DNA of 64,000 nt, taken from positions 32,550,001 through 32,614,000 of the forward strand of contig OZ296657.1 of assembly GCA_965655095.1 (NCBI GenBank), read 5' to 3'. Shown in pieces: positions 29,640-58,541 of this stretch. Under the pieces are notes generated by a model that ran no database searches, was not told the DNA's origin, and saw only the letters and a list, made by a program, of their open reading frames with translations. How positions within the stretch are numbered: position 1 is the stretch's first letter; every line of letters starts with the position of its first letter. Source of the stretch: Haplodiscus bocki (lineage: Eukaryota). A program made the translations under genes and the position numbers.

Positions 29640-29955
29640 ATGAAGAATCAAAATGTTTTCTATATCCACTCTGACGAATTGTGCTCCCTCTCAAACAAAT
29701 TCACACGTTGTGTCGCTAGAGCATCGAGAGTACATGAATTGATCAATGCATATGAGTTATTGGCAGAAGAATTTATTACCGTAGTTCGCCCTCGTAAAGC
29801 TCACTCAGATGATCTCTTAATTTTTCATGGAACTGACTTCGTTTCGTTCTTGCTGGAATGCGGAGACTCAGGTAAAGACGGAGAGTGTACGGAATTCACC
29901 AAAAAATGTGCACTCTATGGTCTCGAGTATGAATGTCCTGTTTTGACTGACCTGG
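29640..29955 (+). CDS. HDAC8: Histone deacetylase 8-like, coding exon 1
   Basis: RASRVHELINAYELL...LLIFHGTDFVSFL...YGLEYECPV matches the HDAC8 N-terminus. Donor G|gtatgt at 29956, phase 1. The ATG is immediately preceded by ttgttttag. Confidence 0.9.
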
Positions 29956-30204
29956 GTATGTTGACTTTTGATTTTCTGATCTCGTAATTTTGCAAAATTC
30001 TGTCAGATTACCGTTTTTTCTGGAACAAAAAGTATGGCAAAACGCGGAAAAGCGTCTATTCAAACCCATTCCCTTTCAAAAATTGATAATGGAAGAATTA
30101 TCATCATTGCTCTAAGAAAGATAACATTGAGTTTTCGCTTTAAATTAAACATACATGAATGAGTGAGTAATTAGAAGATCTTTGGCTTTTGGATTTTTTT
30201 TCAG

Positions 30205-30327
30205 GCGAGTACGCTCTACTACTGGCTGGTGCAGCAATTGATTCGGCTTTGTGCCTAATGACTGACGGAAAGGTAGTTTTTAATTGGTATGGAGGCTGGC
30301 ATCATTCGAAAAAGGATTCAGCTGCCG
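30205..30327 (+). CDS. HDAC8: HDAC8-like, coding exon 2
   Basis: Acceptor ttttcag at 30204; encodes EYALLLAGAAIDSALCLMTDGKVVFNWYGGWHHSKKDSAAG (catalytic HH); donor G|gtaagt at 30328. Confidence 0.93.
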
Positions 30328-34176: not shown

Positions 34177-35019
34177 GAAATTGTACAATTCCTAAATAAG
34201 TTTTTTCAACCTAAAACATTTTTACCTAGAGATGGAAGAGCGGGCAGTTGACTGTCCCGACGATGTTGGAGTTGAATAATCCGTCTACGATGAAAATAAG
34301 AGCGAGCGCTCCTCGTGGAAGTTTTGTAACTCAACAACATTACCAAGATCTGAAGTTGTCTTGTTTCCACTCTGCAATTCTTCTGATACTCATTATTAGC
34401 AGTCTAACGAAACTACTTTTCTACGAGGTACCTTGTGAAGAAATGCCAGTTATGGGTATCTCTGTCAGCTACGATTGGATAAAGACTTCCCGGCCCACAT
34501 CTGAACAAAATTATCTTCACTAACGATAGGCTATTTGTCTCTGACGTTGCTACAGAGACAAAAACTAACTGTAGCAAAAGATGAAAACTCAACTGTATCC
34601 CAAGTGGCAGGAAATCAGCCGGATGTTGTGGAGAAAAGGGTCTTAAAATCATTATCGATGTTGAAGCCCGGACAGCTCCAGAAAACAAAGACAATCTTGA
34701 AAATAGTTTACGAAGCCTCGGATGAAATTAATGAAGACGGATTTCTCACTGCAGAGGATCACGAAAATACGATTGGGGCTACACATTTCGTTTACACTTT
34801 ACAGGAAACAAAGAATAGACTGCATGACTCTGATTACATAGGTTTTTTTTACAGAGGATCGATATTTCCCCGAGCTTCGTTGCCAACTCCGACGCAATGA
34901 AAATATTCCAACCTACTCGAAGCAAAACGGTAGACTTAAAATCCAAAAGCCAGGGCAAGCTTCAAAGAAACAATCACTGGATGACAAGCAAGTTGCACAA
35001 GATTCTCAAGCAGTAGAGA

Positions 35020-35615
35020 TCTCATTACGAGCGTGGAAAGCTCTCAGATTCAGAGAAAATAAAACTCGAGAAGTTATGCAAGAAAGGACCGGCAGCGCAT
35101 GGAACCGTTTCAAATCTGCAAAACCAGTTCCTTGTCTCGGGTGAAAGTTGAAACCATCCTACAGAAAACTTCAGATCCGAAGTACAGACAATACAGAAGA
35201 CATTTTCCCAGTTTGGTAGTTATTCCTTACGATATTAGTGAGTTCTGATCTATTCATTTAGCTTATGAAGACTAATAGCTAAATGCAACATTTGTGTCAA
35301 ATAGCTTGTCACTGTTGAGTACTCTCACGAAAAGTCAGAGTTCGGCCAATGTGAACTAACAGTGCGGAGGAAACTGCTAAAATTTTTGGTCGCATGATCA
35401 CCAAAACTAAACCATTGAAAGTATGGTCTGATGGAGGAACCGAGCTCAAAGGAGCTTTCAAAAAGTGTGAAAGCAACGGCATCGACACCTTCACCACAAA
35501 CAGTGAAACGAAATCGGCATCTGCAGAGCGCAATATTCGATCTCTCAAAAACATCATCCACAAACATTTGGAGAACAAATGGTCTTACCGCTACATAAAC
35601 GTATCTCATATCTAA
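35020..35615 (+). pseudogene. Maverick/Polinton-type retroviral-like (rve, DDE) integrase, disrupted and C-terminally truncated; first of 8 copies
   Basis: KLEKLxKKGPAAxG...YRQYRRHFP...EF*SIHLAY...KPLKVWSDGGTE(F/L)KGAFKK...TTNSETKSA(F/S)AERNIRSLKNIIHKHL...YRYI matches Maverick integrase motifs (WSIDLA, WSDxGxEF, KAxxAERxxRTLK). The first catalytic Asp reads His; stops and frameshifts are shared across copies. Confidence 0.85.
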
Positions 35616-35619
35616 CACG

Positions 35620-36201
35620 ATGAGCTCACAAGAATTTTTTCTAATTCCTGAAGAAAACTATGCTGAAGAGCACACTGAATCATGGGATGTTTCGTTCGAT
35701 CCAAAAATCACTGAGAAAGCCAAACAACTGACGTTGCTACAGAGACAAAAACTAACTGTAGCAAAAGATGAAAACTCAACTGTATCCCAAGTGGCAGAAA
35801 ATCAGCCGGATGTTGTGGAGAAAAGGGTCTTAAAATCATTATCGATGTTGAAGCCCGGACAGCTCCAGAAAACAAAGACAATCTTGAAAATAGTTTACGA
35901 AGCCTCGGATGAAATTAACGAAGACGAATTTCTCACAGCAGATGATCACGAAAATACGATTGGGGCTACACATTTCGTTTACACTTTACAGGAAACAAAG
36001 AATAGATTGCATGACTCTGATTACAAAGGTATTTTACAGAGGATCGATATTTCCCCGAGCTTCGTTGCTAACTCCGACGCAATGAAAATATTCAAACCTA
36101 CTCGAAGCAAAACGGTAGACTTAAAATCGAAACCCCAGGGCAAGCTCCAAAGAAACAATCACTGGATGACAAGCAAGTTGCAGAAGATTCTCAAGCAGTA
36201 G
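35620..36201 (+). CDS. 193-aa hypothetical protein of the array unit, copy 1
   Basis: Open ATG-to-TAG frame MSSQEFFLIPEENY...; directly upstream of the integrase remnant. Confidence 0.5.
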   Translation: MSSQEFFLIPEENYAEEHTESWDVSFDPKITEKAKQLTLLQRQKLTVAKDENSTVSQVAENQPDVVEKRVLKSLSMLKPGQLQKTKTILKIVYEASDEINEDEFLTADDHENTIGATHFVYTLQETKNRLHDSDYKGILQRIDISPSFVANSDAMKIFKPTRSKTVDLKSKPQGKLQRNNHWMTSKLQKILKQ

Positions 36202-36807
36202 AGATCTCATTACGAGCGTGGAAAGCTCTCAGATTCAGAGAAAATAAAACTCGAGAAGTTATACAAGAAAGGACCGGCAGCGTATGGAACCGCTTCAAAT
36301 CTGCAAAACCAGTTCCTTGTCTCGGGTGAAAGTTGAAACCATCCTACTGAATAAAACTTCAGATCCGAAGTACAGACAATACAGAAGACATTTTCCCAGT
36401 TTGGTAGTTATTCCTTACGATATTAGTGAGTTCTGATCTATTCATTTAGCTTATGAAGACTAATAGCTAAATGCAACATTTGTGTCAAATAGCTTTTCAC
36501 TGTTGAGTACTCTCACGAAAAGTCAGAGTTCGGCCAATGTGAACTAACAGTGCGGAGGAAACTGCTAAAATTTTTGGTCGCCTGATCACCAAAACTAAAC
36601 CATTGAAAGTATGGTCTGATGGAGGAACCGAGCTCAAAGGAGCTTTCAAAAAGTGTGAAAGCAACGGCATCGACACCTTCACCACAAACAGTGAAACGAA
36701 ATCGGCATCTGCAGAGCGCAATATTCGATCTCTCAAAAACATCATCCACAAACATTTGGAGAACAAATGGTCTTATCGCTACATAAACGTATCTCATATC
36801 TAACACG

Positions 36808-37389
36808 ATGAGCTCACAAGAATTTTTTCTAATTCCTGAAGAAAACTATGCTGAAGAGCACACTGAATCATGGGATGTTTCGTTCGATCCAAAAATCACT
36901 GAGAAAGCCAAACAACTGACGTTGCTACAGAGACAAAAACTAACTGTAGCAAAAGATGAAAACTCAACTGTATCCCAAGTGGCAGAAAATCAGCCGGATG
37001 TTGTGGAGAAAAGGGTCTTAAAATCATTATCGATGTTGAAGCCCGGACAGCTCCAGAAAACAAAGACAATCTTGAAAATAGTTTACGAAGCCTCGGATGA
37101 AATTAACGAAGACGAATTTCTCACAGCAGATGATCACGAAAATACGATTGGGGCTACACATTTCGTTTACACTTTACAGGAAACAAAGAATAGATTGCAT
37201 GACTCTGATTACAAAGGTATTTTACACAGGATCGATATTTCGCCGAGCTTCGTTGCTAACTCCGACGCAATGAAAATATTCCAACCTACTCGAAGCAAAA
37301 CGGTAGACTTAAAATCCAAACGCCAGGGCAAGCTCCAAAGAAACAATCACTGGATGACAAGCAAGTTGCAGAAGATTCTCAAGCAGTAG
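36808..37389 (+). CDS. 193-aa array ORF, copy 2
   Basis: Open, near-identical to copy 1. Confidence 0.5.
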   Translation: MSSQEFFLIPEENYAEEHTESWDVSFDPKITEKAKQLTLLQRQKLTVAKDENSTVSQVAENQPDVVEKRVLKSLSMLKPGQLQKTKTILKIVYEASDEINEDEFLTADDHENTIGATHFVYTLQETKNRLHDSDYKGILHRIDISPSFVANSDAMKIFQPTRSKTVDLKSKRQGKLQRNNHWMTSKLQKILKQ

Positions 37390-37996
37390 AGATCTCATTA
37401 CGAGCGTGGAAAGCTCTCAGATTCAGAGAAAATAAAACTCGAGAAGTTATACAAGAAAGGACTGGCAGCGTATGGAACCGTTTCAAATCTGCAAAACCAG
37501 TTCCTTGTCTCGGGGTGAAAGTTGAAACCATCCTACAGAATAAAACTTCAGATATGAAGTACAGACAATACAGAAGACATTTTCCCAGTTTGGTAGTTAT
37601 TCCTTACGATATTAGTGAGTTCTGATCTATTCATTTAGCTTATGAAGACTAATAGCTAAATGCAACATTTGTGTCAAATAGCTTGTCACTGTTGAGTACT
37701 CTCACGAAAAGTCAGAGTTCGGCCAATGTGAACTAACAGTGCGGAGGAAACTGCTAAAATTTTTTGTCGCCTGATCACCAAAACTAAACCATTGAAAGTA
37801 TGGTCTGATGGAGGAACCGAGTTCAAAGGAGCTTTCAAAAAGTGTGAAAGCAACGGCATCGACACCTTCACCACAAACAGTGAAACGAAATCGGCATTTG
37901 CAGAGCGCAATATTCGATCTCTCAAAAACATCATCCACAAACATTTGGAGAACAAATGGTCTTATCGCTACATAAACGTATCTCATATCTAACACG

Positions 37997-38578
37997 ATGA
38001 GCTCACAAGAATTTTTTCTAATTCCTGAAGAAAACTATGCTGAAGAGCACACTGAATCATGGGATGTTTCGTTCGATCCAAAAATCACTGAGAAAGCCAA
38101 ACAACTGACGTTGCTACAGAGACAAAAACTAACTGTAGCAAAAGATGAAAACTCAACTGTATCCCAAGTGGCAGAAAATCAGCCGGATGTTGTGGAGAAA
38201 AGGGTCTTAAAATCATTATCGATGTTGAAGCCCGGACAGCTCCAGAAAACAAAGACAATCTTGAAAATAGTTTACGAAGCCTCGGATGAAATAAACGAAG
38301 ACGGATTTCTCACAGCAGATGATCACGAAAATACGATTGGGGCTACACATTTCGTTTACACTTTACAGGAAACAAAGAATAGATTGCATGACTCTGATTA
38401 CAAAGGTATTTTACAGAGGATCGATATTTCCCCGAGCTTCGTTGCTAACTCCGACGCAATGAAAATATTCAAACCTACTCGAAGCAAAACGGTAGACTTA
38501 AAATCGAAACCCCAGGGCAAGCTCCAAAGAAACAATCACTGGATGACAAGCAAGTTGCAGAAGATTCTCAAGCAGTAG
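37997..38578 (+). CDS. 193-aa array ORF, copy 3
   Basis: Open, near-identical to copy 1. Confidence 0.5.
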   Translation: MSSQEFFLIPEENYAEEHTESWDVSFDPKITEKAKQLTLLQRQKLTVAKDENSTVSQVAENQPDVVEKRVLKSLSMLKPGQLQKTKTILKIVYEASDEINEDGFLTADDHENTIGATHFVYTLQETKNRLHDSDYKGILQRIDISPSFVANSDAMKIFKPTRSKTVDLKSKPQGKLQRNNHWMTSKLQKILKQ

Positions 38579-39184
38579 AGATCTCATTACGAGCGTGGAA
38601 AGCTCTCAGATTCAGAGAAAATAAAACTCGAGAAGTTATACAAGAAAGGACCGGCAGCGTATGGAACCGTTTCAAATCTGCAAAACCAGTTCCTTGTCTC
38701 GGGTGAAAGTTGAAACCATCCTACTGAATAAAACTTCAGATCCGAAGTACAGACAATACAGAAGACATTTTCCCAGTTTGGTAGTTATTCCTTACAATAT
38801 TAGTGAGTTCTGATCTATTCATTTAGCTTATGAAGACTAATAGCTAAATGCAACATTTGTGTCAAATAGCTTGTCACTGTTGAGTACTCTCACGAAAAGT
38901 CAGAGTTCGGCCAATGTGAACTAACAGTGCTTAGGAAACTGCTAAAATTTTTGGTCGCATGATCACCAAAACTAAACCATTGAAAGTATGGTGTGATGGA
39001 GGAACCGAGTTCAAAGGAGCTTTCAAAAAGTGTGAAAGCAACGGCATCGACACCTTCACCACAAACAGTGAAACGAAATCGGCATTTGCAGAGCGCAATA
39101 TTCGATCTCTCAAAAACATCATCCACAAACATTTGGAGAACAAATGGTCTTATCGCTACATAAACGTATCTCATATCTAACACG

Positions 39185-39766
39185 ATGAGCTCACAAGAAT
39201 TTTTTCTAATTCCTGAAGAAAACTATGCTGAAGAGCACACTGAATCATGGGATGTTTGGTTCGATCCAAAAATCACTGAGAAAGCCAAACAACTGACGTT
39301 GCTACAGAGACAAAAACTAACTGTAGCAAAAGATGAAAACTCAACTGTATCCCAAGTGGCAGAAAATCAGCCGGATGTTGTGGAGAAAAGGGTCTTAAAA
39401 TCATTATCGATGTTGAAGCCCGGACAGCTCCAGAAAACAAAGACAATCTTGAAAATAGTTTACGAAGCCTCGGATGAAATTAACGAAGACGGATTTCTCA
39501 CAGCAGATGATCACGAAAATACGATTGGGGCTAAACATTTCGTTTACACTTTACAGGAAACAAAGAATAGATTGCATGACTCTGATTACAAAGGTATTTT
39601 ACAGAGGATCGATATTTCCCCGAGCTTCGTTGCTAACTCCGACGCAATGAAAATATTCCAACCTACTCGAAGCAAAACGGTAGACTTAAAATCCAAACGC
39701 CAGGGCAAGCTCCAAAGAAACAATCACCGGATGACAAGCAAGTTGCAGAAGATTCTCAAGCAGTAG
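39185..39766 (+). CDS. 193-aa array ORF, copy 4
   Basis: Open, near-identical to copy 1. Confidence 0.5.
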   Translation: MSSQEFFLIPEENYAEEHTESWDVWFDPKITEKAKQLTLLQRQKLTVAKDENSTVSQVAENQPDVVEKRVLKSLSMLKPGQLQKTKTILKIVYEASDEINEDGFLTADDHENTIGAKHFVYTLQETKNRLHDSDYKGILQRIDISPSFVANSDAMKIFQPTRSKTVDLKSKRQGKLQRNNHRMTSKLQKILKQ

Positions 39767-40372
39767 AGATCTCATTACGAGCTTGGAAAGCTCTCAGATT
39801 CAGAGAAAATAAAACTCGAGAAGTTATACAAGAAAGGACCGGCAGCGTATGGAACCGTTTCAAATCTGCAAAACCAGTTCCTTGTCTCGGGTGAAAGTTG
39901 AAACCATCCTACTGAATAAAACTTCAGATCCGAAGTACAGACAATACAGAAGACATTTTCCCAGTTTGGTAGTTATTCCTTACGATATTAGTGAGTTCTG
40001 ATCTATTCATTTAGCTTATGAAAACTAATAGCTAAATGCAACATTTGTGTCAAATAGCTTGTCACTGTTGAGTACTCTCACGAAAAGTCAGAGTTCGGCC
40101 AATGTGAACTAACAGTGCGGAGGAAACTGCTAAAATTTTTGGTCGCCTGATCACCAAAACTAAACCATTGAAAGTATGGTCTGCTGGAGGAACCGAGTTC
40201 AAAGGAGCTTTCAAAAAGTGTGAAAGCAACGGCATCGACACCTTCACCACAAACAGTGAAACGAAATGGGCATTTGATGAGCGCAGTATTCGATCTCTCA
40301 AAAACATCATCCACAAACATTTGGAGAACAAATGGTCTTATCGCTACATAAACGTATCTCATATCTAACACG

Positions 40373-40954
40373 ATGAGCTCACAAGAATTTTTTCTAATTC
40401 CTGAAGAAAACTATGCTGAAGAGCACACTGAATCATGGGATGTTTCGTTCGATCCAAAAATCACTGAGAAAGCCAAACAACTGACGTTGCTACAGAGACA
40501 AAAACTAACTGTAGCAAAAGATGAAAACTCAACTGTATCCCAAGTGGCAGAAAATCAGCCGGATGTTGTGGAGAAAAGGGTCTTAAAATCATTATCGATG
40601 TTGGAGCCCGGACAGCTCCAGAAAACAAAGACAATCTTGGAAATAGTTTACGAAGCCTCGGATGAAATTAGCGAAGACGGATTTCTCACAAATGATGATC
40701 ACGAAAATACGATTGGGGCTACACATTTCGTTTACACTTTACAGGAAACAAAGAATAGACTGCATGACTCTGATTACAAAGGTATTTTACAGAGGATCGA
40801 TATTTCCCCGAGCTTCGTTGCTAACTCCGACGCAATGAAAATATTCCAACCTACTCGAAGCAAAACGGTAGACTTAAAATCCAAACGGCAGGGCAAGCTT
40901 CAAAGAAACAATCACTGGATGACAAGCAAGTTGCAGAAGATTCTCAAGCAGTAG
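40373..40954 (+). CDS. 193-aa array ORF, copy 5
   Basis: Open, near-identical to copy 1. Confidence 0.5.
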   Translation: MSSQEFFLIPEENYAEEHTESWDVSFDPKITEKAKQLTLLQRQKLTVAKDENSTVSQVAENQPDVVEKRVLKSLSMLEPGQLQKTKTILEIVYEASDEISEDGFLTNDDHENTIGATHFVYTLQETKNRLHDSDYKGILQRIDISPSFVANSDAMKIFQPTRSKTVDLKSKRQGKLQRNNHWMTSKLQKILKQ

Positions 40955-41563
40955 AGATCTCATTACGAGCGTGGAAAGCTCTCAGATTCAGAGAAAATAA
41001 AACTCGAGGAGTTATACAAGAAAGGACCGGCAGCGTATGGAACCGTTTCAAATCTGCACAACCAGTTCCTTGTCTCGGGTGAAAGTTGAAACCATCCTAC
41101 TGAATAAAACTTCAGATCCGAAGTACAGACAATACAGAAGACATTTTCCCTGTTTGGTAGTTATTCCTTACGATATTAGTGAGTTCTGATCTATTCATTT
41201 AGCTTATGAAGACAAATAGCTATTTGTGCAACAATTATGTCAAATTCCTTCTTGTCACTGTTGAGTACTCTAACGAAAAGTCAGAGTTCGGCCAATGTGA
41301 ACTAATAGTGCGGAGGAAACTCCTAAACTTTTTGGTCGCATGATCAGCAAAACCAAACCCTTTAAAGTATGGTCTGCTAAAGGTACCGAGTTCAAAGGAG
41401 CTTTCAAAAAGTTGTGTGAAAGCAAAGGCCTTGACACTATCACCACAAACAGTGAAGCGAGATCGGCATTTGCAGAGCACAATGTTCCATCCCTCAAAAA
41501 CCTACAACCATTTGGAGAACAAATGGTCTTATCGTCACATAAACCTATATTTTATCTAGCACA

Positions 41564-42142
41564 ATGAGCTCAAGAATTTCTTCTAATTCTTGCAGAAATC
41601 TATGCTCGAGAGCACACTAAATCATCGGAGGTTTTGTTCGATCCAGGAGTCACTGAGTAAGCCAAACAATTTAAATGCTACAGAGACAAAAACTAACTTT
41701 AGCAAGAGATGAAAACTCAACTGTATCCCAAGTGGCAGAAAATCAGCCGGATGTTGTGGAGAAAAGGGTCTTAAAATCAATATCGATGTTGAAGCCCGGA
41801 CAGCTCCAGAAAACAAAGACAATCTTGAAAATAGTTTACGAAGCCTCGGATGAAATTAACGAAGACGGATTTCTCACAGCAGATGATCACGAAAATACGA
41901 TTGGGGCTACACATTTCGTTTAAACTTTACAGGAAACAAAGAATAGATTGCATGACTCTGATTACAAAGGTATTTTACAGAGGATCGATATTTCCCCGAG
42001 CTTCGTTGCTAACTCCGACGCAATGAAAATATTCAAACCTACTCGAAGCAAAACGGTAGACTTAAAATCGAAACCCCAGGGCAAGCTCCAAAGAAACAAT
42101 CACTGGATGACAAGCAAGTTGCAGAAGATTCTCAAGCAGTAG
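41564..42142 (+). pseudogene. Disrupted array ORF copy (variant-B 5' end, internal stops)
   Basis: Divergent 5' part with indels and TAA; a second stop ends the frame at 41923 (TAC to TAA). Confidence 0.7.
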
Positions 42143-42748
42143 AGATCTCATTACGAGCGTGGAAAGCTCTCAGATTCAGAGAAAATAAAACTCGAGAAGT
42201 TATACAAGAAAGGACCGGCAGCGTATGGAACCGTTTCAAATCTGCAAAACCAGTTCCTTGTCTCGGGTGAAAGTTGAAACCATCCTACTGAATAAAACTT
42301 CAGATCCGAAGTACAGACAATACAGAAGACATTTTCCCACTTTGGTAGTTATTCCTTACAATATTAGTGAGTTCTGATCTATTCATTTAGCTTATGAAGA
42401 CTAATAGCTAAATGCAACATTTGTGTCAAATAGCTTGTCACTGTTGAGTACTCTCACGAAAAGTCAGAGTTCGGCCAATGTGAACTAACAGTGCGGAGGA
42501 AACTGCCAAAATTTTTGGTCGCATGATCACCAAAACTAAACCATTGAAAGTATGGTCTGATGGAGGAACCGAGTTCAAAGGAGCTTTCAAAAAGTGTGAA
42601 AGCAACGGCATCGACACCTTCACCACAAACAGTGAAACGAAATCGGCATTTGCAGAGCGCAATATTCGATCTCTCAAAAACATCATCCACAAACATTTGG
42701 AGAACAAATGGTCTTATCGCTACATAAAGGTATCTCATATCTAACACG

Positions 42749-43330
42749 ATGAGCTCACAAGAATTTTTTCTAATTCCTGAAGAAAACTATGCTGAAGAGC
42801 ACACTGAATCATCGGATGTTTCGTTCGATCCAAAAATCACTGAGAAAGCCAAACAACTGACGTTGCTACAGAGACAAAAACTAACTGTAGCAAAAGATGA
42901 AAACTCAACTGTATCCCAAGTGGCAGAAAATCAGCCGGATGTTGTGGAGAAAAGGGTCTTAAAATCATTATCGATGTTGACGCCCGGACAGCTCCAGAAA
43001 ACAAAGACAATCTTGAAAATAGTTTACGAAGCCTCGGATGAAATTAACGAAGACGAATTTCTCACAGCAGATGATCACGAAAATACGATTGGGGCTACAC
43101 ATTTCGTTTACACTTTACAGGAAACAAAGAATAGATTGCATGACTCTGATTACAAAGGTATTTTACACAGGATCGATATTTCGCCGAGCTTCGTTGCTAA
43201 CTCCGACGCAATGAAAATATTCCAACCTACTCGAAGCAAAACGGTAGACTTAAAATCCAAACGCCAGGGCAAGCTCCAAAGAAACAATCACTGGATGACA
43301 AGCAAGTTGCAGAAGATTCTCAAGCAGTAG
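42749..43330 (+). CDS. 193-aa array ORF, copy 6 (intact)
   Basis: Open; shares diagnostic variants with the copy at 36808. Confidence 0.5.
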   Translation: MSSQEFFLIPEENYAEEHTESSDVSFDPKITEKAKQLTLLQRQKLTVAKDENSTVSQVAENQPDVVEKRVLKSLSMLTPGQLQKTKTILKIVYEASDEINEDEFLTADDHENTIGATHFVYTLQETKNRLHDSDYKGILHRIDISPSFVANSDAMKIFQPTRSKTVDLKSKRQGKLQRNNHWMTSKLQKILKQ

Positions 43331-44127
43331 AGATCTCATTACGAGCGTGGAAAGCTCTCAGATTCAGAGAAAATAAAACTCGAGAAGTTATACAAGAAAG
43401 GACTGGCAGCGTATGGAACCGTTTCAAATCTGCAAAACCAGTTCCTTGTCTCGGGGTGAAAGTTGAAACCATCCTACAGAATAAAACTTCAGATATGAAG
43501 TACAGACAATACAGAAGACATTTTCCCAGTTTGGTAGTTATTCCTTACGATATTAGTGAGTTCTGATCTATTCATTTAGCTTATGAAGACAAATAGCTAA
43601 TTGCAACACTTTTGTCAAATTCCTTCTTGTCACTGTTGAGTACTCTAGCGAAAAGTCAGAATTCGGCCAATGTGAAATAAGATTGCGGAGGAAACTCCTA
43701 AACTTTTTGGTCGCATGATCACCAAAACCAAACCCTTTAAAGTATGGTCTGCTAAAGGTACCGAGTTCAAAGGAGCTTTCAAAAAGTTGTGTGAAAGCAA
43801 AGGCATTGACACTATCACCACAAACAGTGAAGCGAGATCGGCATTTGCAGAGCACAATGTTCCATCCTTCAAAAACCTACAAACATTTGGAGAACAAATA
43901 GTCTTATCGTCACATAAACCTATATCTTATCTAACACAATGAGATCAAGAATTTCTTCTAATTCTTGAAGAAATCTATGCTCGAGAGCACACTAAATCAT
44001 CGGAGGTTTTGTTCGATCCAAGAGTCACTGAGTAAGCCAAACAATTTAAATGCTACAGAGACAAAAACTAACTCTAGCAAGAGATGAAAACTCAACTGTA
44101 TCCCAAGTGGCAGAAAATCAGCCTGAT

Positions 44128-44680
44128 AGCGCCTGCGAAAGAGCGGATGGAAAAATCCCCTGTGAATGATCGCGCGGAACAAGCCCCTGCGAAAGAACGC
44201 ACGGATTTATCCCCTGTGAAGGAGCGCGCGGAAAATGCCCCTGCGAAAGAGCACACGGAAAATTACCCTGCGAACGAGCGCACGGAAAAAGCCCCTGCGA
44301 AATAGCGCACAGAAAACGCCCCGCGAAATAGCGCTTGGAAAAGGCCCCTACAAACGAGCGCAGAGGAAAAGCCTCTACAAAAGGGCGCATGGATAAAGCC
44401 CCTGCGCAAGAGCGCTCGGAGGAGGCCCCTGCGAAAGAGCGCACGTTTAAAGCCCCTGCGAAAGGGCGAACTGAAAAGCTTCTGCGAAAGAGCTCACGGA
44501 AAAAGTCCCTGCGAGCAGCGCACTCTGGAAGCCCCTGCGTAAGAGCGCACGGTGAAAGCCCCTGCGAAGGGGCGAAAGGAAAAAGCCTCTGCGAAAGAGC
44601 GCACGGAAAAAGCTCCTGCGATATAGCGAACGGAAAATTCCCCGCGAAATATTTTAACGGAAACGCCCCTGCAAGATAGT
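44128..44680 (+). repeat. 27-bp GC-rich minisatellite, ~20 units (GCCCCTGCGAAAGAGCGCACGGAAAAA)
   Basis: Direct reading of repeated units; translates as APAKERTEK repeats in one frame. Confidence 0.9.
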
Positions 44681-45218
44681 GTCGAGAAAGATACCGCAAA
44701 GCAGTACCCGGAAAATTGCTCGGAGAGTGCTGATAAAGCCTCTTTGGAATGAAATGTGGAGAAAATGACTTCAAAAACAGTTCCATCCTTACATAACACC
44801 GATCGAGTCAGAGCCGGTATAAGAGCCCCGAGGATAACAATACTAGGTGTTGTGCGGTTCCGGAAACACCATGAAGGTGATCTTCGTGACAATTATCTGT
44901 CGTGTTTGTTGGTTTAAAAATGTTGAGATGGAATGAACAAAGAATGCAGACGATTTTTAATACGAATAGACGATGAAAAACAGGATTGAAAACCCTTCTG
45001 GAGAGTTATGAGCGTTATAGGTGGTTGGGTTTGGCTTTGTTACCAAAAAAACTACCCACCACTGAGTAGCAAACTTAATAATTTCAATTGAATAACTAAG
45101 CAGGAAATAATGTATGGGACATGAATGATTCCCGCCATTGTAGGCAGGCAATGCTGATGGTCATCCACAAAAAGACCAATCAAAACTGCCAAAAATTCGA
45201 TTTGTAAGTTGAAGGTTG

Positions 45219-45778
45219 CTAGGACACTTGTTGAAGAAAACGATTAGATGAACATATCAATTGAGATTGGTACTTACATATGATGTACAGATCCGAAGTA
45301 TCCATTAAATCAGTGCGTAAAATGAACGACATCAAATTCTTTAAGCATACATCACAAGCTAATTTCAGGTGATATCCATCACAATCTCCCTTGGTGCTTA
45401 GAACACAATCTTTGATTCCTGTCAATCGTAGTTTTTTGCAATGTGACCTTCCCTTCCTACTCCCTCCGGTGCAGGGTTGATAATGACCTTCACATGTCCA
45501 AACTTCGCCGTTACCCTGAGGGGGACCGTTCTCAACTTTCCGTAGAGCCAGCTTCCTCGTACCAATCTGAATTTTCTCAGAAAAGCGGCGGTTGTTGACA
45601 CGCTGATTGACAGCTCTTTAATCTTCTTGGTTTTTTGACCCATCCCGAACCAGCCATCTTTGTCACCTATCCCCATGACAGCTTTGTATCTGGTTGATAT
45701 GGTCCCGTCAGGTCGCATATTTTGTAAAGGCATCGTTTTGATGATTTCCTCAGTAAACATTAAACATAACACTTTCAT
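45219..45778 (-). pseudogene. Highly diverged intronless ribosomal protein uS5 (eukaryotic RPS2)-like gene with a single frameshift
   Basis: EEIIKTMPLQ..TRYKAVMGIGDKDGWFGMG..RGSW..GKLRTVPLRVTAKFGHVKVIINPAPEGVG..AK(K)LRLTGIKDC..S.KG parallels RPS2 [74 protein letters not shown]. ORFs 45422-45778 and 45219-45425 join if one A is added to the A6 run at 45432-45437. Confidence 0.85.
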
Positions 45779-45799
45779 TCAGGTGGAATTGTTTGAGAG

Positions 45800-46500
45800 A
45801 GAGAGAAAGACTCAATTCTCTTTCGAGATCCAAATTTGGTTAACAAATACTCTTGATGATATTTCATTGACTGCAAGTACAACAAATAAAAAATGAACAA
45901 GACAACGTAGGATTGAATTCTTTCTGCAGAAGATAGGCTTTGACTGCATGTTTGTTGAAGTTATTGACACCATCGATTATGTTATTTCTGAACAGAAAGT
46001 TTGCCATGGAGACAGCACGACCGAAAAAGAAACGTTTTCATATCGCTTGGGGTTCAAATAGCGGAGTATATTGGTGGTTGAAGCTCGGAGTTGTCGTTCG
46101 GGCACCTGAAACACTAAATAGGGAGTAAAATGAAAAATGTATTCATCATCTAAAAGTTGACAGAGGAAAGAGAAAGTAATGTACTCCAGGTGATAGCAAA
46201 TGGGCAGAAATTTTGATCTTTTGAGGTGCTCTTGGTAAGATTGCTTGCGTCCAAAAATCCAGGAGAAACAGGAACGTTGAAAAGATTCAAGGCGCTTTAG
46301 GGATGTAATGTCAGGATACCAAGCTGGAAAACCATAAAGCAGAATTGATAACACCATACTATGGTACAGCTGCAGCTTTATAATAGAGGGGGTGTTGGGC
46401 AGAGCAAAGAGAGGGTAGTTCGAACCCTGTTTCGTAGTTGCAATCAACTTTTCTCGCCTTGCGGTAAAAGTTTGTTTACATTTTGGCTGAGAAGTTCAGA
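45800..46500 (-). mobile_element. 5'-truncated CR1/L2-like LINE, 3' end of ORF2 and tail
   Basis: KLQLYHSMVLSILLYGFPAWYPDITSLKRLESFQR...WI...SYQEHLKRSKFLPICYHLE is typical of the post-RT region; ends in a Cys-rich tail and a short hairpin/(CT)n near 45800. Confidence 0.8.
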
Positions 46501-46621
46501 GTTTGAAGAGACTTCAAGTGTTTATTCTCTAACCACGTATTTAACATTTGTACCTCATATTATTGGCAATGAGAAAAAGAAAATTTTGAACTTTGTCTTA
46601 CATGGCATCCCAATTCGGTTT

Positions 46622-46830
46622 GCTGTATGACTTTCGATAGCTGTATGACTTTCGGTGGCAGTATGATTTTCTCTAGCTGTATGACTTCCTGTAGCTGTAT
46701 GACTCGGGTAGCTGTATAACTTTCGGCTAGCTGTTTGACTCTGGTACAGCTGTATGATTATTGTGTAGGTAGTATGCTCTCACCACTGAGGAATCCTGGC
46801 GGTTTTGAAGGTCAGGTTAGGTTAGGTTAG
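46622..46830 (+). repeat. ~18-bp tandem repeat (GCTGTATGACTTTCGGTA, ~8 units) followed by (GGTTA)3
   Basis: Units read directly at 46622-46758; GGTTAGGTTAGGTTAG at ~46815-46830. Confidence 0.75.
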
Positions 46831-47189
46831 GAATGCACGCTTCTTCTTCACCTAGGTCGCTAAGTGAACAAACTTGAAATACCAGTAGTCTAGCCTTGGC
46901 TACATGTAACTTTTGTTTACAAGCTAAGATTCAACCGCGAATTAACTGTTTTGCTTTAGGAATTCAACCGCGAAAAGATTGACATAATCTTAGGAATGGG
47001 GTGCGAAAAAACATGTGAATCCCTATACTGCTTTTAATCCAGCGCTGACGAATTTTTCTGTCACTCGAACATTGCTGACAAGAATCATGCTTAAGCTACA
47101 TGTGTCAAAAACCAGGGGAACAAAAAGCTACCTACCAATGCTGTACCAACAACTGGTGGATAACTTGAGCTTGGTTTTGAATATAAAAA

Positions 47190-50100
47190 AAAACACTTTA
47201 TTCTGGATGGGATTTGTTAACCATAACATAATATAAGTACTTATATCATGATTATATCCCATGAGTGGTGTAATGTTAAGTAAATGGTGATATAATTAAA
47301 TAATATAGTTATGTCAAGTTATCGAACTTGCCCTGCTCTATTTTAGCTACTTGAAGCGATAATCAATCCATTGTTTTTCTCCGTCCTCAGTTTCGTCCAA
47401 TGTGCTCTTGAATGACTGTATTTATTTCTTTCACTGTAAGAAATGTATATTTTCTGTTTTCAATTTTTTTAGGCGGGGTGTTCCGCATTTGGATTGCTCT
47501 TTTGAAAAAACATTTGTCCATTAATCTAGTGTTCGTATGCTGCCCGAAGTATAACAAGTTTGTTCCTTGTTGTTTCATCACCTGGGCAGTGGGTGTTTCG
47601 AGCTAACCAGCAAAAGCAGGAACAAATCCATTTTTCCATCGATAGAAAAAAGTTGATTTTTTCAGATCCAGTAAAAAACATTCTGGCAAGATGTTATGGT
47701 GATTCTTAAGATCAGATGATCTTTCATATTTGGTTCCATTGAAACGAGCTTTGATTCCGCAGTTCAGTTGTTTTCAAGAGTTGTTTTGAGGTTTTCTCTG
47801 ATATCGCCAATTGATATGCTGAATACTGTAGATGACTAATCACCAGAGCATTCAGAAGTAATAATATAATTTTCTCGGCGAAAATGCAAGTTGCACAATG
47901 CCCTAATTCCAAAGGCCATTTTGCGAAGAATTATTTTGATTTCATTCTTGAATATGACGTTTAAATCTAAGCACACACCAAGATGCTTGACACACGAGGA
48001 GGTTTCTATTATCTGGACCTTAACTTGTAGTTTAAGTGTTCAAATTTTTCGGTTTTTGATGGCTTAGAAAAATTTTCGAACTCGGTTTTTCTGCATTTAT
48101 TGTTAATTAGTGGGTTTCAAAAGACGTAACCAACTTTTGTTGCTGTCAAAATTAAGCAATAGAAGCAATAGAACAAAAGTATGTCATGTGAAATGGAGTT
48201 AAATGCTTTAAATAAGTCTAGTAAAGCTGCAACGACGAACCGATTTTGATCCCAAGATTTCCTAATGCTTTCAGTCGCATAAAGTAATGGATCGGTAGTA
48301 GAATATTTAGACCGAAAGCCGAACAGCATTTGGCTTAGATTATTTCTAACCGAGTATTCACTTATTTGTTGTCTTAGAATCTTTTCAAAAAGCTTTGCCA
48401 GTGCTGAGGTTATTGAAATTGGTCTATAATTATTCGCATTCTCAGGTTCCCTTTTTTGAAGATGGGAATAACAAAAGCTCGCTTGAGGTGGTTCGGAAAT
48501 TTTCCTTCTTGAATGAAAGTATTAACGAGATAACATAGAGCTTCTGCAATTTTATTTAATAGGTCTTTGAGCATCCATGCAGGAATATTTGACGGACCAA
48601 TAGATTTGTTAGAGTTTAAATTTTGGTTTCTTTTATTTGAAATATACTGATCGGTTGAAAGGTTAGTACAGATAATTTTCCGGGAAACTCTTCGTTCAGT
48701 TTCTATAGGGTCTTTTACCACAGTAGTCCCCGAGTTTTTCTAAACGATGTTCTAGGAAGTTTAAAATACGCTTAGGGTCGGTTATTAAATCACCAACGCT
48801 GCTCCTTGGAGGCTAGATATGTGAATTTAAGTTCGCTGTGCATTTCTGGCCTCATTAATGATATTTATGTTATCTGTTTCGGATGTTAAGTCTCGGAAAA
48901 ATTTCATCTGCTTACTCATTTTATCTGGGTTCAGGCTTTCAAGCAGTCTATTTTGATTCAACTTGTAATTTTCATCGTTCGGATTGCTGTTTTGGTCAAT
49001 CTGGTCGTAGATCTTTTTGGTCGCAGCTTTGACCGATTTTTCTTGAATAAGCAGCCTACTTTTATCATTGCGGATTTCAACTTTTCTCTTACTGATGTTG
49101 TGGTCTAGTGCTTTCTCTATATTTCTGACGGGACCTGTATACGTTCCTTTGGCACAGTTTTGAGCGTAAAAATCACCCAAGTGCCCCATAATAACAGATT
49201 GTTTGAAGCTGTCTGGGTTGCTTGTTTATTTGTCGAAAATCTCCACACGCGATTTTTTAGTTGTTTTCTTTTCCAATTTACTGATTGCGGAAATTGCTCG
49301 ATGGTCAACATCCGTCATGATTTTGGGTTTCAAGAGAGTGTATGAAATGTACGTTTCCAAAAAAAACTGGCATTTGGTACGTCCGTGCTTATGTAATCAA
49401 TCATTGACTCTAAAACCCCTTTACTTCTTGTGGGCTCCGTTTTGTTCAAAACATGCAGACCATATGGTGTCAATATTATCTCTAGGCTTTTGCGTTCCTT
49501 TCTGTTTAGAGAGTTGATGTTATAATCACCCACAAGAGTGGTGGGTTTTTTTTCCACGATTGCATTGTCAGGGCTAGTTGACAATCCTTCTGAGAACTCA
49601 CCAGTTAAAGATTTAATGGGATTGTAACTCACATTTGAGCTGCGTTCCACCAATATGATTGTTCTTTAGTTTGCATTTGACCCATAGGCTTTCGAATTTT
49701 TTGTTATTTATGTAAATGAGATCTTTTCTAACTTTAGATCGCAGAGAAGAGTGCTCTACTGGCATAATTCCGCCGCCGTGCTTTTTGGTTTCCTATCAAC
49801 TCTAAACGTTTTGAAATTCTTTCGATCAAATTGCCAAACACGTTCGTCGTCTGTTTCAAATAACCATGTTTCACAAATGCCAAGAATTGTATTCTCACTG
49901 AGATCAAGAAGCATATGTTCAATTTGGTGCTTTTTTTAGCTATACTTTTCCCGCTGATGACGAAAAACTTCAATTTTTTTGATCTTTTCTTGAAAATGTT
50001 TGACACAACTTTAAAAACATGGGGAGGTCCGGGATTTGTTTCGATATCACAAGATTTCATCAGTTTTTACTTTATGGAAATAAGGTTTGCTAACTTGATA

Positions 50101-53900: not shown

Positions 53901-55030
53901 CGGCAACGTACTTTTGTAGTTTTACCAGAATGAGACCTTCCTAAAGCTAACCTATTTGTAGCTTTCCTCATAGTAGAAGTGGTACTGTGGCGTGTCTTGT
54001 TTGGACGGTTTGAGTTTTTAGCTGAGCAGTTTTTTGATGCTCCTGAGGTGAAGTAAATTTTGTCTACAACTAGATGGTCGCTGTTGTTCATGTTTATATA
54101 CTTTGAGACTAGATGATAGACACACCCATTTCATTTTCTTTCAACCGTCTTGTTGATTCTCCTCACTCTCTTGATTTCCAAACCTCAGGAGGTTTCTCCT
54201 TTGGTTGCTCCTTTTTGTATTACAACAGTTCTTTATCATTTTGTTTCTTTAATAAGTTGATAAGCTTAACGCCTATAGATTTCTATTTTTTTCTCCGCAT
54301 CTTCGTGCTACTTCGGAAATCGATATAATGACTGGGCAACTGAGTGAAGCGCGATAAGTTCTAAGTATTTGCTTTCATCCATTTGTATTTATTTTCGGTA
54401 TTTACGATTCCAAAGGGTACTTTATTTCGCCTCGAATTGAATAGAAATCAATGAAAGTAAATAAATAAAGGAATTACCCGCTTCACTTTAGCGCTATTTA
54501 CGTCACTCTTCATTTTCAAGTACATGTAGTAATTGATTCAAATATTCTTAAATCATTTATTTCGCATCTTATTTTCTTGTTTTTTCAAAATTATCAGCCA
54601 ATTTTTGCTCAAATCCATGTTTGGTTATGCCAAATTCCTAGCGCTTAATATCTAGCATGCTTGATGCCTACGTTTTCCCATGTTTTTAGAAATTGAAATG
54701 ACATCGTAAAAAACCATAATACTGTTGATCCGAATCAAGGGGGAGGTGGTTATTGCTCACAGTCGGCTATAATAACAGGCGAAAATTCCGCATCACCATG
54801 ACAGAAGTAATAGATGGGGCCTAAATGAGACGGGTCCTAAATTCAGAATGTTACATCACCTTGTAATAACTTCAAAGCATACGTACATGTATAAAGAGGC
54901 TGAATCAGCTGGGTTAAAGGGTCCTAGTAAGAGGAGAAATGCTGGAAAAATTTTGCGAGACACCACTCGGGATCGTCCCGTTGAATAGAATCATGAGAAA
55001 ATCGGGAGAAATTGCTGTTTTCTTTTTCAG

Positions 55031-55226
55031 GCTTTTGCTATATCAACGATTGTGTGATTTCGATCTTGACTTTGAGGAAACGTTTTGACCGAATCCTTTA
55101 TGTTGACTTGGATGTCCATCATGGAGACGGAGTTGAAGAAGCTTTTTACTGCACCGACAAAGTGTTCACGCTTTCTTTCCATCGGTTCACCCCTGGACTG
55201 TTTTACCCAGGAAGCGGTGATAAAAG
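55031..55226 (+). CDS. HDAC8: HDAC8-like, coding exon 3
   Basis: Acceptor ttttcag at 55030 (phase 1, matches exon 2); [39 protein letters not shown]; donor AG|gttaat at 55227. Confidence 0.95.
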
Positions 55227-55529
55227 GTTAATGTTTCTATAATTCTATGAACAAACAATCAGAGATGGGTGGTTGCTTTTCGTCCAAGGCAAAGTTAGGT
55301 GCTAGTCTTCATATTTGTATTGACATACCAAAATACACATTCGAATTTACGGTAATTAATTTCTCTCCATTGTAATCTGAAGATCATTTGGGCGTCATCA
55401 ATCAATTCATTGCCACCTTTAGACAAAAGTTTCGGGTGTCCGAAAAAATGATTTTTCCAACCGCTCGACGAAATAAAAAGCTTTACTGAGGATACTTGAG
55501 AATGTTGTTTACCCAGAACTTAATTTTAG

Positions 55530-55743
55530 TCACATTGGAACGTACAAAGGAGTTAATCACTGTTTGAATGTCCCATTTGATGAGGGTCTTACTGACAATG
55601 CGTTTATTGAAATCAGCAAATCAATCATATCAAAAACAGTGAAATCTTTTCAACCCGATGCAATAGTTTGTCAATGTGGTGCTGATGCTTTGGCTCACGA
55701 CCCCGTGGAAGGCCTCAATTTGACAACCCGATCATACATTGTG
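55530..55743 (+). CDS. HDAC8: HDAC8-like, coding exon 4
   Basis: Acceptor ttttag at 55529 (phase 2); HIGTYKGVNHCLNVPFDEG..FQPDAIVCQCGADALAHDP..LNLT; donor at 55744. Confidence 0.93.
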
Positions 55744-56261
55744 GTAAAATAATTAATTATATTCATTTACACCGAAAAATAGTTGTTTGCGATTTCTGTC
55801 AAACTTTTTGGAATGGGATTCGTTCAAGTTTTTGTCTAGAATTTATATATATGTTTGAAAAATGTGTATTAGAAAACTAAGCCCTGAGGCTAACTTAGAA
55901 AACTAACTTCGAGGGTTGATTGGCCCGAGAGCTTTGCTCAAATGCCAGAGGGTTTATAGACTGAAGTTCAAATGTTTTTGGCAACGATATGGAACGGCAT
56001 GTGGAAAATATTCAGAGAAATTCCGGTCATACAAGCAACAAAACTCGAAACATTAGAGAGAATGTTAACATTGATAGTAGGCACAGGATTTGTCTCTCAA
56101 GATCGTTTTACAAACATTGAATTCGATTCTAAATAAGGTTTCCCCCAAAACCCCCCGAACTTATTACACTTTCGCAAAAAAGTATTACATCACAGTCTTC
56201 GAATTCTTTTTTCCGATCTGTTCACAACTCGCACAAGTTCCTAGATAATGACCAAGGACAT

Positions 56262-56335
56262 GAGGGAATTGCGTTGACTCGAACTTGGGACCGTTCGTGC
56301 CGCAGTCGCATCCTCTACGGACTATGCCATTCTCT
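56262..56335 (-). repeat. tRNA-derived SINE head / tRNA pseudogene
   Basis: Minus strand TGGCATAGTCCG (A-box-like) and AAGTTCGAGTC (B-box-like) at tRNA spacing; stems broken. Confidence 0.4.
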
Positions 56336-57092
56336 TGACAATCAGTGTTTCTATTTTTTATTCAAAATATCGAGCGAATGAAATAATATAGCGTTTCTCA
56401 CTTGTATATAAATGTGCAAATATTGACTGAGTTTCTGTACACTTATATTCGTCATATCGTGGCCCCTTCAAAAATCAGTTATATTTAGTCGATTTGTTCA
56501 CTAGTGTTCCGTTGGAGCAAGTACTGCGAAGCAGAGCTTCGCCCCTGTGTTGAAAAAATTACACAAAAATGTAATTAGAAAATAATTTATCTGACTTTCA
56601 ATTTTCATATATTGGCTCATTTTTTCTGTAGTTCCTATGTCGCTTCATTTAATTTTGGCAATCCTTTGCCAGGCAGTGTCTCGGTGGACTCTCTTAAAAG
56701 TAGCTGATTCACAGGCAATTTAATGCTTGAAATCAGTTCAAAAGTTTCAAAAAAGTGGCGGAAGTTTTGGAAAGTAATTTTGTTGAAAATCCGTATAATT
56801 TTCAAGGGGTTTTCAGCTTTAGGCTGGGTCTAAAACTTGGAGAAATTGCTTGCCCTGCTGAAAATTGGAAGCTCTACAACATTTTTCAGAAATTATTTTG
56901 ATCTGGCTTGTCTGTCAACTTTGTTGAAGATCGAAAGTTTAATCAATAAAACAAATTGCTTTAGAATGTAACTTCTGCAAAATTTGAGATCTAACCTCGA
57001 CTTGTTGGAACTTTAATTGAAGGTCCACATGGTTGCTAATTTAATTCAAATAGCTACACGATAACATTAAGGAATTAGTGAGTGAGTACATA

Positions 57093-57658
57093 CACTAGCC
57101 GACAAAAGTAACCGGCAAATCTCTATCAGTAAGAGTCGACATTCAAGTTCAATTTTTGTAGACCATTTTTCACTGTAGAAAAAACTCGTCGAAACAATAT
57201 CTCCTCAGAATTGAATTTGAAGTAGTTTTATTGGTGCTTTTTGTTGCGAAATGGTTGCGAAAGTTATGTTATCCTAATTTATACATGCAACTGACAATTT
57301 TTTGAAGTTTTCGTCAAAATATCATAACATAAAAAAAAATCGAGAACCTCTCTTGTGCTTTTTTTAGCTATGAATCTCCGAAACGTTTCTCTACTTTCGA
57401 GAAGCAAACTCCTGAGTAGCAGTGGAACAAAAACAGATTATTTGCTATATCTTAATACATGGGGAGTCGGATGTCAGTTCAGTTTTCGTTCCGCAGCTAC
57501 ACAGAAGTTTGTTTCTCGAGTGTTAAATTCAAATATTTTTGGATTATTTAATTTATACAAGACTTGTCTTTAAAAAGAATTTGTCTATCTAAATAGGATT
57601 TGAATATTGAATTGACTCTGACTTGAAATGGACTGACGGTTACTTTTGACGGCTAGTG
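57093..57658. mobile_element. Tc1/mariner-type MITE (566 bp) with 22-bp TIRs and TA target duplication
   Basis: Left end TA|CACTAGCCGACAAAAGTAACCG; right end CGGTTACTTTTGACGGCTAGTG|TA; one mismatch between TIRs; no coding capacity. Confidence 0.85.
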
Positions 57659-58069
57659 TATTGCTTTTTTTCCATATCATTCATTCTGTTCAAGCTGCCG
57701 ATTTATTTTTCGATCCAGATTTCAAAATGCAAAGATACCATTTTAAATCGTTCCGAAAAGGCAGCTGGTACCGTGCTATTCACTTTCGTTGACAATAAAA
57801 TTGAAAACAAAATGGACGCCATATAACTACATCTGTCGAATGTTTTTGTGTTGAATATTTTTTTAATAGAGAAGCTATACTCGAGCACATTCTGGCAATT
57901 TCAAGTTCCTCGTCAAACGATGATAGAAATGGCAACCGTTTGTGAAAGAAACGTCTTAAGTTATATTGCTCCCTTGACATCCACAAGTTACTGTGTTTGC
58001 GTTATACTGAAAAATGAAAGAAGGCAACATTTCACTAAGTATGTTTTTGTTAGCATCATTTTTATATAG

Positions 58070-58375
58070 GTCACGAAGTTAATCGCTTCATTTGGCAAAC
58101 CTGTGTTATTCATGGGAGGAGGTGGATACAACAGAAGTAACACTGCGAGATGTTGGACCTCGATACAAGCTGCAGTACTTGACCGATTACCTCTTGACGA
58201 AGATATTCCAGAACATGAGTTTTTCGACGAGTATGGGCCAACTTATGAATTAGAAATCAAACCGGAGAAAAAAGCCGATAAAAACAGTGCTCAGTATTTG
58301 CAATCCCTAGTTCAACACTGCGATGATGTGCTTTGGAAGATTGCTCCTAAGAATGATGTGAACGTTGCCGTTTGA
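58070..58375 (+). CDS. HDAC8: HDAC8-like, terminal coding exon
   Basis: Acceptor tatag at 58069 (phase 0); KPVLFMGGGGYNRSNTARCWT..LDEDIPEHEFFDEYGPTYELEI. The five exons total 1155 nt (384 aa) with consistent phases. Confidence 0.93.
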   Translation, partial: VTKLIASFGKPVLFMGGGGYNRSNTARCWTSIQAAVLDRLPLDEDIPEHEFFDEYGPTYELEIKPEKKADKNSAQYLQSLVQHCDDVLWKIAPKNDVNVAV

Positions 58376-58541
58376 AAGGCTTTTGTTTTTGCTTTCATTT
58401 GCTATTTTTGATCGACTATTTGTTTTCTTGGACTAACTTTCTTCACTAATTGTTTTCCTCTGAAATTAAACGGCCTTATGAAATAGATATGTTATTTTTT
58501 ATTACTTATTGTTGGTTTTTTTCCTTTGTTACAGATTGAAA

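Follow-up and report, generated by a model that had tools for sequence, protein, structure and literature searches.

The window, by which we mean the whole 64,000-nucleotide stretch of DNA analysed here, very probably contains a pseudogene that is the broken copy of a shortened, fast-evolving uS5 gene of Maverick/Polinton-like elements; this degree of confidence covers the identity of the sequence, not the role of the protein. We conclude that an ancestral element of this type acquired the two-domain core of eukaryotic cytosolic uS5 (RPS2), lacking both the N-terminal extension and the tail at the C-terminus, and that intact elements encode the resulting very basic uS5-like protein, of 144–182 amino acids (aa), as an accessory gene. 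The element family has integrated many times in one host genome, probably that of a marine animal; purifying selection keeps the gene among close copies, and between lineages the gene differs drastically, within a replaceable cassette on a similar backbone. In the window, the element is cut to its terminal 2.9 kb, a stretch of foreign DNA is nested within this remnant, and the gene has undergone two frame changes; the copy is probably inactive at present.

The uS5-like remnant lies on the minus strand at 45310..45778 and has no introns, in agreement with the first-pass annotation, which had recognized an intronless minus-strand uS5-like sequence at this site (phmmer search of the PDB, E ~ 1e-12). 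It is made up of two adjoining minus-strand open stretches of 118 and 68 codons that differ in frame. The 118-codon stretch matches eukaryotic uS5/RPS2 chains in the PDB (E ~ 1e-12) over around 100 residues with roughly 38% identity, a value that falls within the 35–40% estimated earlier by eye, and the alignment is colinear through the N-domain and the linker into the beginning of the C-domain. A search with the 68-codon stretch alone returned nothing from either Pfam or the PDB at thresholds as loose as E ≤ 10, and the homology of this stretch to uS5 is established solely through an intact relative, P0001, to which the window copy is 83–84% identical. The S5 profile search that had been proposed as a check gave a divided answer. 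In the window copy, PF00333 (Ribosomal_S5 N-domain, dsRBD-like) reaches 25.3 bits against a curated cut-off of 27.1, and PF03719 (Ribosomal_S5_C) matches at its first 18 profile positions only, with 14.2 bits against a cut-off of 21.5; P0001, in contrast, passes both cut-offs, with 33.8 bits for S5 and 44.1 bits for S5_C. At the curated cut-offs, both S5 domains are recognized in the intact relative, whereas the window copy itself scores below them.

Alignment of the window copy with P0001 requires three reading frames, which means that the copy has two frame changes and not the single frameshift described at first; the accompanying observation that there is no internal stop stands, as no in-frame stop occurs within the matched parts. 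P0001 runs unbroken through the region of the window's frame shift. The stop codon homologous to that of the relatives is at 45310–45312, so that the roughly 90 bases at 45219–45309, to which the uS5 sequence had been extended, are an out-of-frame read-on that lies outside uS5. Like the entire clade described below, the window copy has neither the N-terminal region nor the C-terminal tail of canonical uS5; the missing N-terminal part had been recognized before, and our alignment of clade and canonical proteins (A2) bears this out. The window contains no N runs, and Rfam and tRNA scans of it found nothing.

A HMMER pass over 1.84 billion representative proteins gave 105 matches, the best of which are short proteins without names that rank ahead of canonical RPS2 (~38% identity, E ~ 1e-8). 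The closest of these, P0001, is an intact protein of 145 aa that shares 84% identity with the window copy (E = 5e-49), and about 20 further representatives are nearer to P0001 than to a canonical RPS2. Intact members of this clade are 144–182 aa long. In alignment A2, they share three features clade-wide: a deletion of two residues after a conserved tryptophan, a common N-terminal end at which around 95 canonical residues are missing, and an end just past the S5_C domain at which around 45 residues are missing. Mean identity is 42% within the clade (range 24–98%), 66% among canonical uS5 proteins (44–96%) and 33% between the clade and canonical uS5 (20–44%). The uS5 tree that had been suggested as a check separates the clade from canonical uS5: with a distance (neighbour-joining, NJ) tree, a method prone to long-branch effects, 89 of 100 bootstraps recover it as a single split. 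A search with a profile of the clade found further members in ENA assemblies only, all of them again without names, and the next matches were ordinary archaeal S5.

The relatives are all encoded in ENA metagenome assemblies, on long contigs, and one clade member lies on a 600-base TARA ocean scaffold. The window corresponds to ctg88266 (382,682 bases, 35.7× coverage) of assembly ERZ26859043, which is also the source of loci L001, L003, L004, L005, L007, L011 and L013; a second assembly, ERZ25074608, is the source of L006, L008, L009 and L012. The L005 locus does not translate to P0002. Two side observations concern gene and protein boundaries. At L001:5103-5195, upstream of the called ATG of P0001, there are codons for the conserved residues that start other clade members; no in-frame start precedes these codons, and what may be a splice-acceptor-like site is close by, so the 5′ boundary of the gene in the L001 lineage is uncertain. 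In the representative library, P0011 (508 aa) joins an unrelated N-terminal region of around 300 aa to a near-canonical RPS2 that is 82% identical to P0019, and is possibly a chimeric retrocopy in another genome.

The uS5-like remnant sits within a 2.9-kb terminal fragment of a Maverick/Polinton-like element (44128..47033, minus strand) that is colinear with loci L001, L003, L011 and L013 at 76–90% DNA identity and comprises the terminus, an upstream region, the uS5-like gene, its 3′ flank and a minisatellite. The first-pass annotation had put the copy about 1.1 kb away from Maverick-derived DNA; it lies instead inside Maverick-like DNA, and the open stretches of eight element loci detected no other element remnant in the window. 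Likewise, tblastn gave no match in the window for the polymerase, g336 or g205. At the outer end of the fragment, a conserved terminal segment of around 200 bases (46833..47033, minus strand, with 47033 as the outermost base) is 87–90% identical in L001, L003, L005, L011 (twice) and L013, and is the best-conserved part of the element. Homology begins at the identical base in L001, L003, L005 and the window, and the DNA flanking this point is unrelated. The end motif is AGTAGT in L001 and L003 and AGCAGT in the window, and that of L005 is also one base off; an (AGT)2 end motif has been described for vertebrate Mavericks (PMC8097293). The terminus is found upstream of the gene in the window and in six loci of its assembly (L001, L003, L004, L005, L011 and L013), the contig of L004 starting within the terminal segment, and the AGTAGT terminus is known from this assembly only. 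The distance from terminus to gene is 0.5–0.9 kb in L001, L003, L004, L011 (both copies), L013 and, with a nested foreign stretch excluded, the window, and 2.5 kb in L005. An inverted copy of the terminal segment was sought in the window and none was found; a single terminus is defined for the one arm covered of each element. In L011 (L011:1261-8438), two uS5-like genes lie 6 kb apart, and a separate copy of the terminal segment stands before each of them, which indicates that the element end is duplicated there, in tandem or nested.

At the other end of the fragment, a 27-bp minisatellite (44128..44649), detected with TRF, matches arrays in L001 (much longer), L003, L004 and L005. It is located 3′ of the uS5-like gene in the copies compared, and in the window it is shortened at the point where an unrelated array starts. 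Its length varies from around 0.5 kb in the window to over 2 kb in L001 (L001:6179-8715), where it is open in all six frames and therefore yields spurious long ‘genes’ from gene callers.

Between the terminal region and the gene, the window has a foreign stretch of around 0.6 kb that occurs once in the window and is absent from L001, L003, L004 and L005. An open reading frame (ORF) on the minus strand (45977..46447), mostly within this stretch, had been read as the 3′ end of a LINE directly beside the uS5-like sequence. Foreign DNA is indeed close by, but it is nested inside the element, and the LINE call, made by eye, has no Pfam match behind it. LINE-like ORF fragments directly upstream on the same strand might suggest that the uS5 fragment was borne or transduced by a LINE, as a chimeric retrocopy or by 3′ transduction. 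The LINE-like stretch is missing, however, from the other copies compared, the sequence of which is continuous across that point, and we consider a LINE origin exceedingly improbable. An equally slight chance falls to an ordinary processed pseudogene of host RPS2 that decayed neutrally. Such a pseudogene would share with the window copy the lack of introns, a 5′ truncation relative to RPS2 and the frame changes, but it would not be expected to be 84% identical to an intact protein and roughly 38% identical to canonical uS5, nor to have flanks in common with copies at other loci; moreover, intact members of the clade are under purifying selection (see below), and there is no poly(A) run 3′ of the gene in the window.

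The fragment is intronic, as had been stated, to an HDAC8-like gene that runs on the opposite strand and has five exon-bearing open stretches colinear on PF00850. The 5′ exons (29640..30356, plus strand; open stretches 29640-29984 and 30171-30356) match profile positions 5–63 and 77–123, and the 3′ exons (54997..58372, plus strand; 54997-55239, 55477-55749 and 58070-58372) match positions 119–186, 179–256 and 267–297; the exons were searched singly, unjoined, and all 40 PDB matches of the first stretch (40/40) are HDAC8. The intron spans around 24.7 kb, from 30356 to about 55000, and holds the element fragment, a tandem array and a LINE-like region. The array (34541..44127, plus strand) consists of seven full units of 1189 bp plus a partial unit at each end, 89–99% identical, and six of the units keep an intact 193-aa ORF without a Pfam match; the array shows no relation to the element copies and directly adjoins the truncated element. 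Just beyond the element terminus, a decayed LINE-like region (47034..50060, minus strand) was assigned by eye from reverse transcriptase- and endonuclease-like ORF fragments, one of which was scanned with Pfam and gave no match.

Elsewhere in the window, we observed an uninterrupted 1177-aa ORF (58509-62042, plus strand) with ubiquitin-like and BAG6 domains, around 130 bases past the last HDAC8-like exon, the only relatives of which are metagenome proteins without names (99%, 71% and 45% identity), which suggests a host lineage lacking annotated near relatives. Short repeats at 24294-24479 and 56161-56550 are 56–73% identical to the flanks of L003, L005 and L013, outside the elements, and are probably another dispersed repeat of the genome. 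A 238-aa ORF (5205-5921, plus strand) matches the end of the rhodopsin-type GPCR profile with 18.4 bits, below the cut-off.

At other loci, an ORF of around 336–345 aa and a protein-primed family-B DNA polymerase (pPolB) come after the uS5-like gene and are encoded on the opposite strand. In the window's assembly, the gene points inward from the terminus and is convergent with the polymerase gene block. Polymerase remains adjoin the uS5-like gene in nine loci (one weak) from two assemblies. PF03175 scores 46.3 bits in a 1166-aa open frame of L001 and is listed in the gene tables of L003 (weak) and L012; tblastn detected polymerase remains in L004, L005, L007, L011 and L013 and a weak one in L006, and none was seen near L008 and L009. 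The polymerase is in one frame in L001 only, and the other copies need two or three frames, which indicates that most of the element copies are dead. Coverage of the L001 contig (ctg63079) is around 24×, compared with around 68–79× for most other copies and 35.7× for the window contig, and could reflect a haplotype-specific or polymorphic insertion. In the second assembly, single precomputed matches concern two further element functions: a 133-aa ORF in L006 that resembles a double jelly-roll (DJR) capsid protein (PF21738) and a weak match to Peptidase_C5, an adenain-type protease, in L012 (PF00770). Within the one arm covered for each element, there is no rve-type integrase family in the gene tables or Pfam scans, and no packaging ATPase, second (inverted) terminus or target-site duplication was seen; eight or nine other element ORFs have no Pfam match.

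These loci bear directly on the origin of the gene, which the first-pass annotation had ascribed either to capture by a Maverick, virus or other mobile element or to a neofunctionalized host paralogue. A host family of diverged uS5 paralogues that merely adjoins Mavericks, or that provides a preferred landing site for them, would be compatible with the definition of just one terminus and with the lack of a polymerase near L008 and L009. The gene is, however, inside the shared terminus in L001, L003, L005, L011 (twice), L013 and the window, with unrelated DNA outside, and it lies inside wherever a terminus is recognizable; polymerase remains are adjacent in most loci; and the linkage holds across elements with polymerases that are 44–63% identical, as well as in the second assembly. 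We therefore regard the host-paralogue reading as improbable. The inspection of further copies and their flanks, which had been recommended, thus turned up a shared terminus and pPolB remains at other loci, and the capture reading is sustained by a distinct clade located near the ends of pPolB-bearing elements in two assemblies.

Comparison of close copies indicates that the gene has been conserved as a protein. Between the window and L001, the gene is 89.1% identical at the DNA level and its flanks are 78.9% and 79.5% identical (Fisher p = 8e-6); between L001 and L003, the corresponding values are 97.7% and around 91.5% (Fisher p = 2e-6). The two open stretches were analysed apart, the second, of 29 codons only, being uninformative for dN/dS. 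For the longer stretch, dN/dS is 0.38 between the window and L001 (p = 0.019) and 0.47 between the window and L003 (p = 0.044), and it is 0.28 between L001 and L003 (few changes, p = 0.08), all of these estimates being based on few changes. Judged from these comparisons, close copies of the uS5-like gene are under purifying selection, and part of the apparent conservation of the gene could be due to recent copying. The earlier proposal that the copy diverged while under selection to remain a protein is consistent with these values (dN/dS 0.28–0.47), with the better conservation of the gene than of its flanks and with the intact relatives of 144–182 aa. The argument from which that proposal started, that a stop-free copy implies selection, applies to the long history of the clade and not to the window copy: at around 11% divergence from intact relatives, one or two new stops are expected, and the probability of none is 0.14–0.37, so a window copy without stops is unremarkable.

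The same data limit the chance, which we consider small, that the gene is a genuine Maverick passenger without function, captured once and copied along, its apparent conservation reflecting no more than the youth of the copies. In favour of this reading, the elements are dead in most cases and few substitutions lie behind the dN/dS estimates. Against it, two independent pairs each show significantly higher conservation in the gene than in either flank, open frames of 144–182 aa are kept in lineages only 24–50% identical, and a two-domain fold is predicted at high confidence.

Conservation among close copies is combined with sharp differences between lineages. Over the first 300 bases of the terminus, L001 and L013 share 87.7% identity, and over around 4 kb of backbone they share 85.4%, whereas around 1.6 kb that includes the gene is unalignable and the two uS5-like proteins are around 36% identical. 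L004 and L005 show the same discordance between cassette and backbone. At short range, the relation is reversed: the uS5-like protein of L003 is 97% identical and its backbone proteins are 89–91% identical, and in L011 the values are 92% and 82–88%. The notion that the gene is everywhere far more diverged than the backbone was therefore rejected as too strong. Alignment fails for the non-coding parts of the cassette as well, and cassette exchange between diverged element lineages thus seems more likely, on these alignments, than point-wise diversifying selection alone.

A model of P0001 generated by AlphaFold2 with alignment A2 has a pLDDT of 92.3 and, in Foldseek comparisons, superposes on uS5 of 80S ribosomes over 140 residues with a TM score of 0.87–0.88 and an rmsd of 1.6–1.7 Å; since A2 contains canonical uS5 rows, the model is biased towards the uS5 fold. 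Among the viral proteins of BFVD, the model has no fold match at E ≤ 0.001. Of 56 core positions at which canonical uS5 is near-invariant, clade members retain an average of 51%, compared with 67% in other strongly diverged uS5, a taxonomically unassigned comparison set. Retention is uneven: 22/56 positions are kept in at least 80% of clade members, and 20/56 are lost in at least 80%; at only one of these 20 (1/20) does one and the same new residue occur throughout the clade. The pI of intact members is 9.5–10.2. Together, these features suggest that the uS5-like protein is a conserved basic RNA-binding core from which ribosomal constraint has been partly released.

We considered two broad routes by which such a protein could act, the first-pass annotation having suggested translation hijack or a dsRNA-binding decoy as candidate functions. 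On the first, the truncated uS5 would enter the host 40S subunit in place of uS5, at the mRNA entry channel, and bias translation towards the element, or would otherwise act directly on translation. In its favour, S5 of bacteria functions with no more than the core domains, the predicted structure keeps the uS5 core fold (TM 0.87), and 22 of 56 near-invariant positions are kept in at least 80% of members. Against it, the protein lacks the conserved eukaryotic N-terminal segment and the tail, and 20 of 56 near-invariant positions are free to vary; lineages are only 24–50% identical and whole cassettes are replaced, which is not the pattern of a protein held in place by rRNA contacts. We judge this route unlikely. 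Were it to hold, no other core protein of the small ribosomal subunit would be known so far from a virus-like element of eukaryotes, and the cassette-like variability would reflect an arms race at the ribosome. On the second route, the protein of live elements would interact with the host by binding RNA, outside the canonical pathway of ribosome assembly. Double-stranded RNA that arises from convergent transcription might be masked by it, or it might compete with uS5 for RNA or partner proteins. The lost extensions, the relaxed constraint, the turnover of the cassette and the conserved convergent position near the terminus together favour such an off-ribosome role over incorporation into the 40S subunit, and we put it forward tentatively as a possible function. 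What probability remains would be divided between a protein that decoys the partners of uS5 and one that has no function.

Comparison with known systems places this gene family between several of them. Eukaryotic cytosolic uS5 (RPS2) has the same S5 dsRBD-like N-domain followed by an S5 C-domain and provides the best matches in both sequence and fold. The clade differs from it by the absence of around 95 N-terminal and around 45 C-terminal residues, by the two-residue deletion, by the retention of only about half of the near-invariant positions and by being encoded in a mobile element. Viral double-stranded RNA-binding proteins built on the dsRBD fold are small, basic and fast-evolving, with genes close to the ends of linear viral DNA genomes. 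The uS5-like protein resembles them as a small, basic, dsRBD-like protein encoded near an element end, an analogy that may serve as a functional lead only; in contrast to them, it has a uS5-type domain joined to an S5 C-domain, and it has no match in sequence or fold among the viral proteins compared (BFVD).

In its position, the gene resembles the accessory genes of Mavericks. Vertebrate Mavericks carry variable ‘accessory regions’ between the terminus and the core genes (PMC8097293), and the uS5-like gene likewise lies between the terminus and the core gene block. The accessory genes of adintoviruses are host-derived and vary between lineages (PMC8502044), as the uS5-like gene does; in contrast to the present family, a ribosomal protein is mentioned in neither account (PMC8097293, PMC8502044). 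Virus-encoded ribosomal proteins offer a second parallel, in that a ribosomal-protein homologue is found in a viral or virus-like genome: phages carry ribosomal-protein genes (PMC6375957), and a 2024 report, which does not mention uS5, presented eL40 of giant viruses as the first ribosomal protein from a virus of eukaryotes (PMC11499249). The uS5-like gene differs from these in being truncated and highly diverged. In the literature searched, we found no prior report of a uS5-like cargo gene in Mavericks and no ribosomal protein described for a Maverick, eL40 being the sole eukaryotic-virus case there.

These comparisons also carry a warning for annotation, since copies of this kind may be mistaken for pseudogenes of RPS2, and in the collections searched no name is attached to any of the roughly 25 protein clusters (0/~25). 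They offer, in addition, a searchable case of how integrated DNA viruses of animals handle host RNA sensing or translation. The uS5-like gene has remained linked to the polymerase block through deep divergence and shows variability like that of a host-interaction gene. Derived from the universally conserved uS5 and reduced to its RNA-binding core, the family thus stands apart from both precedents.
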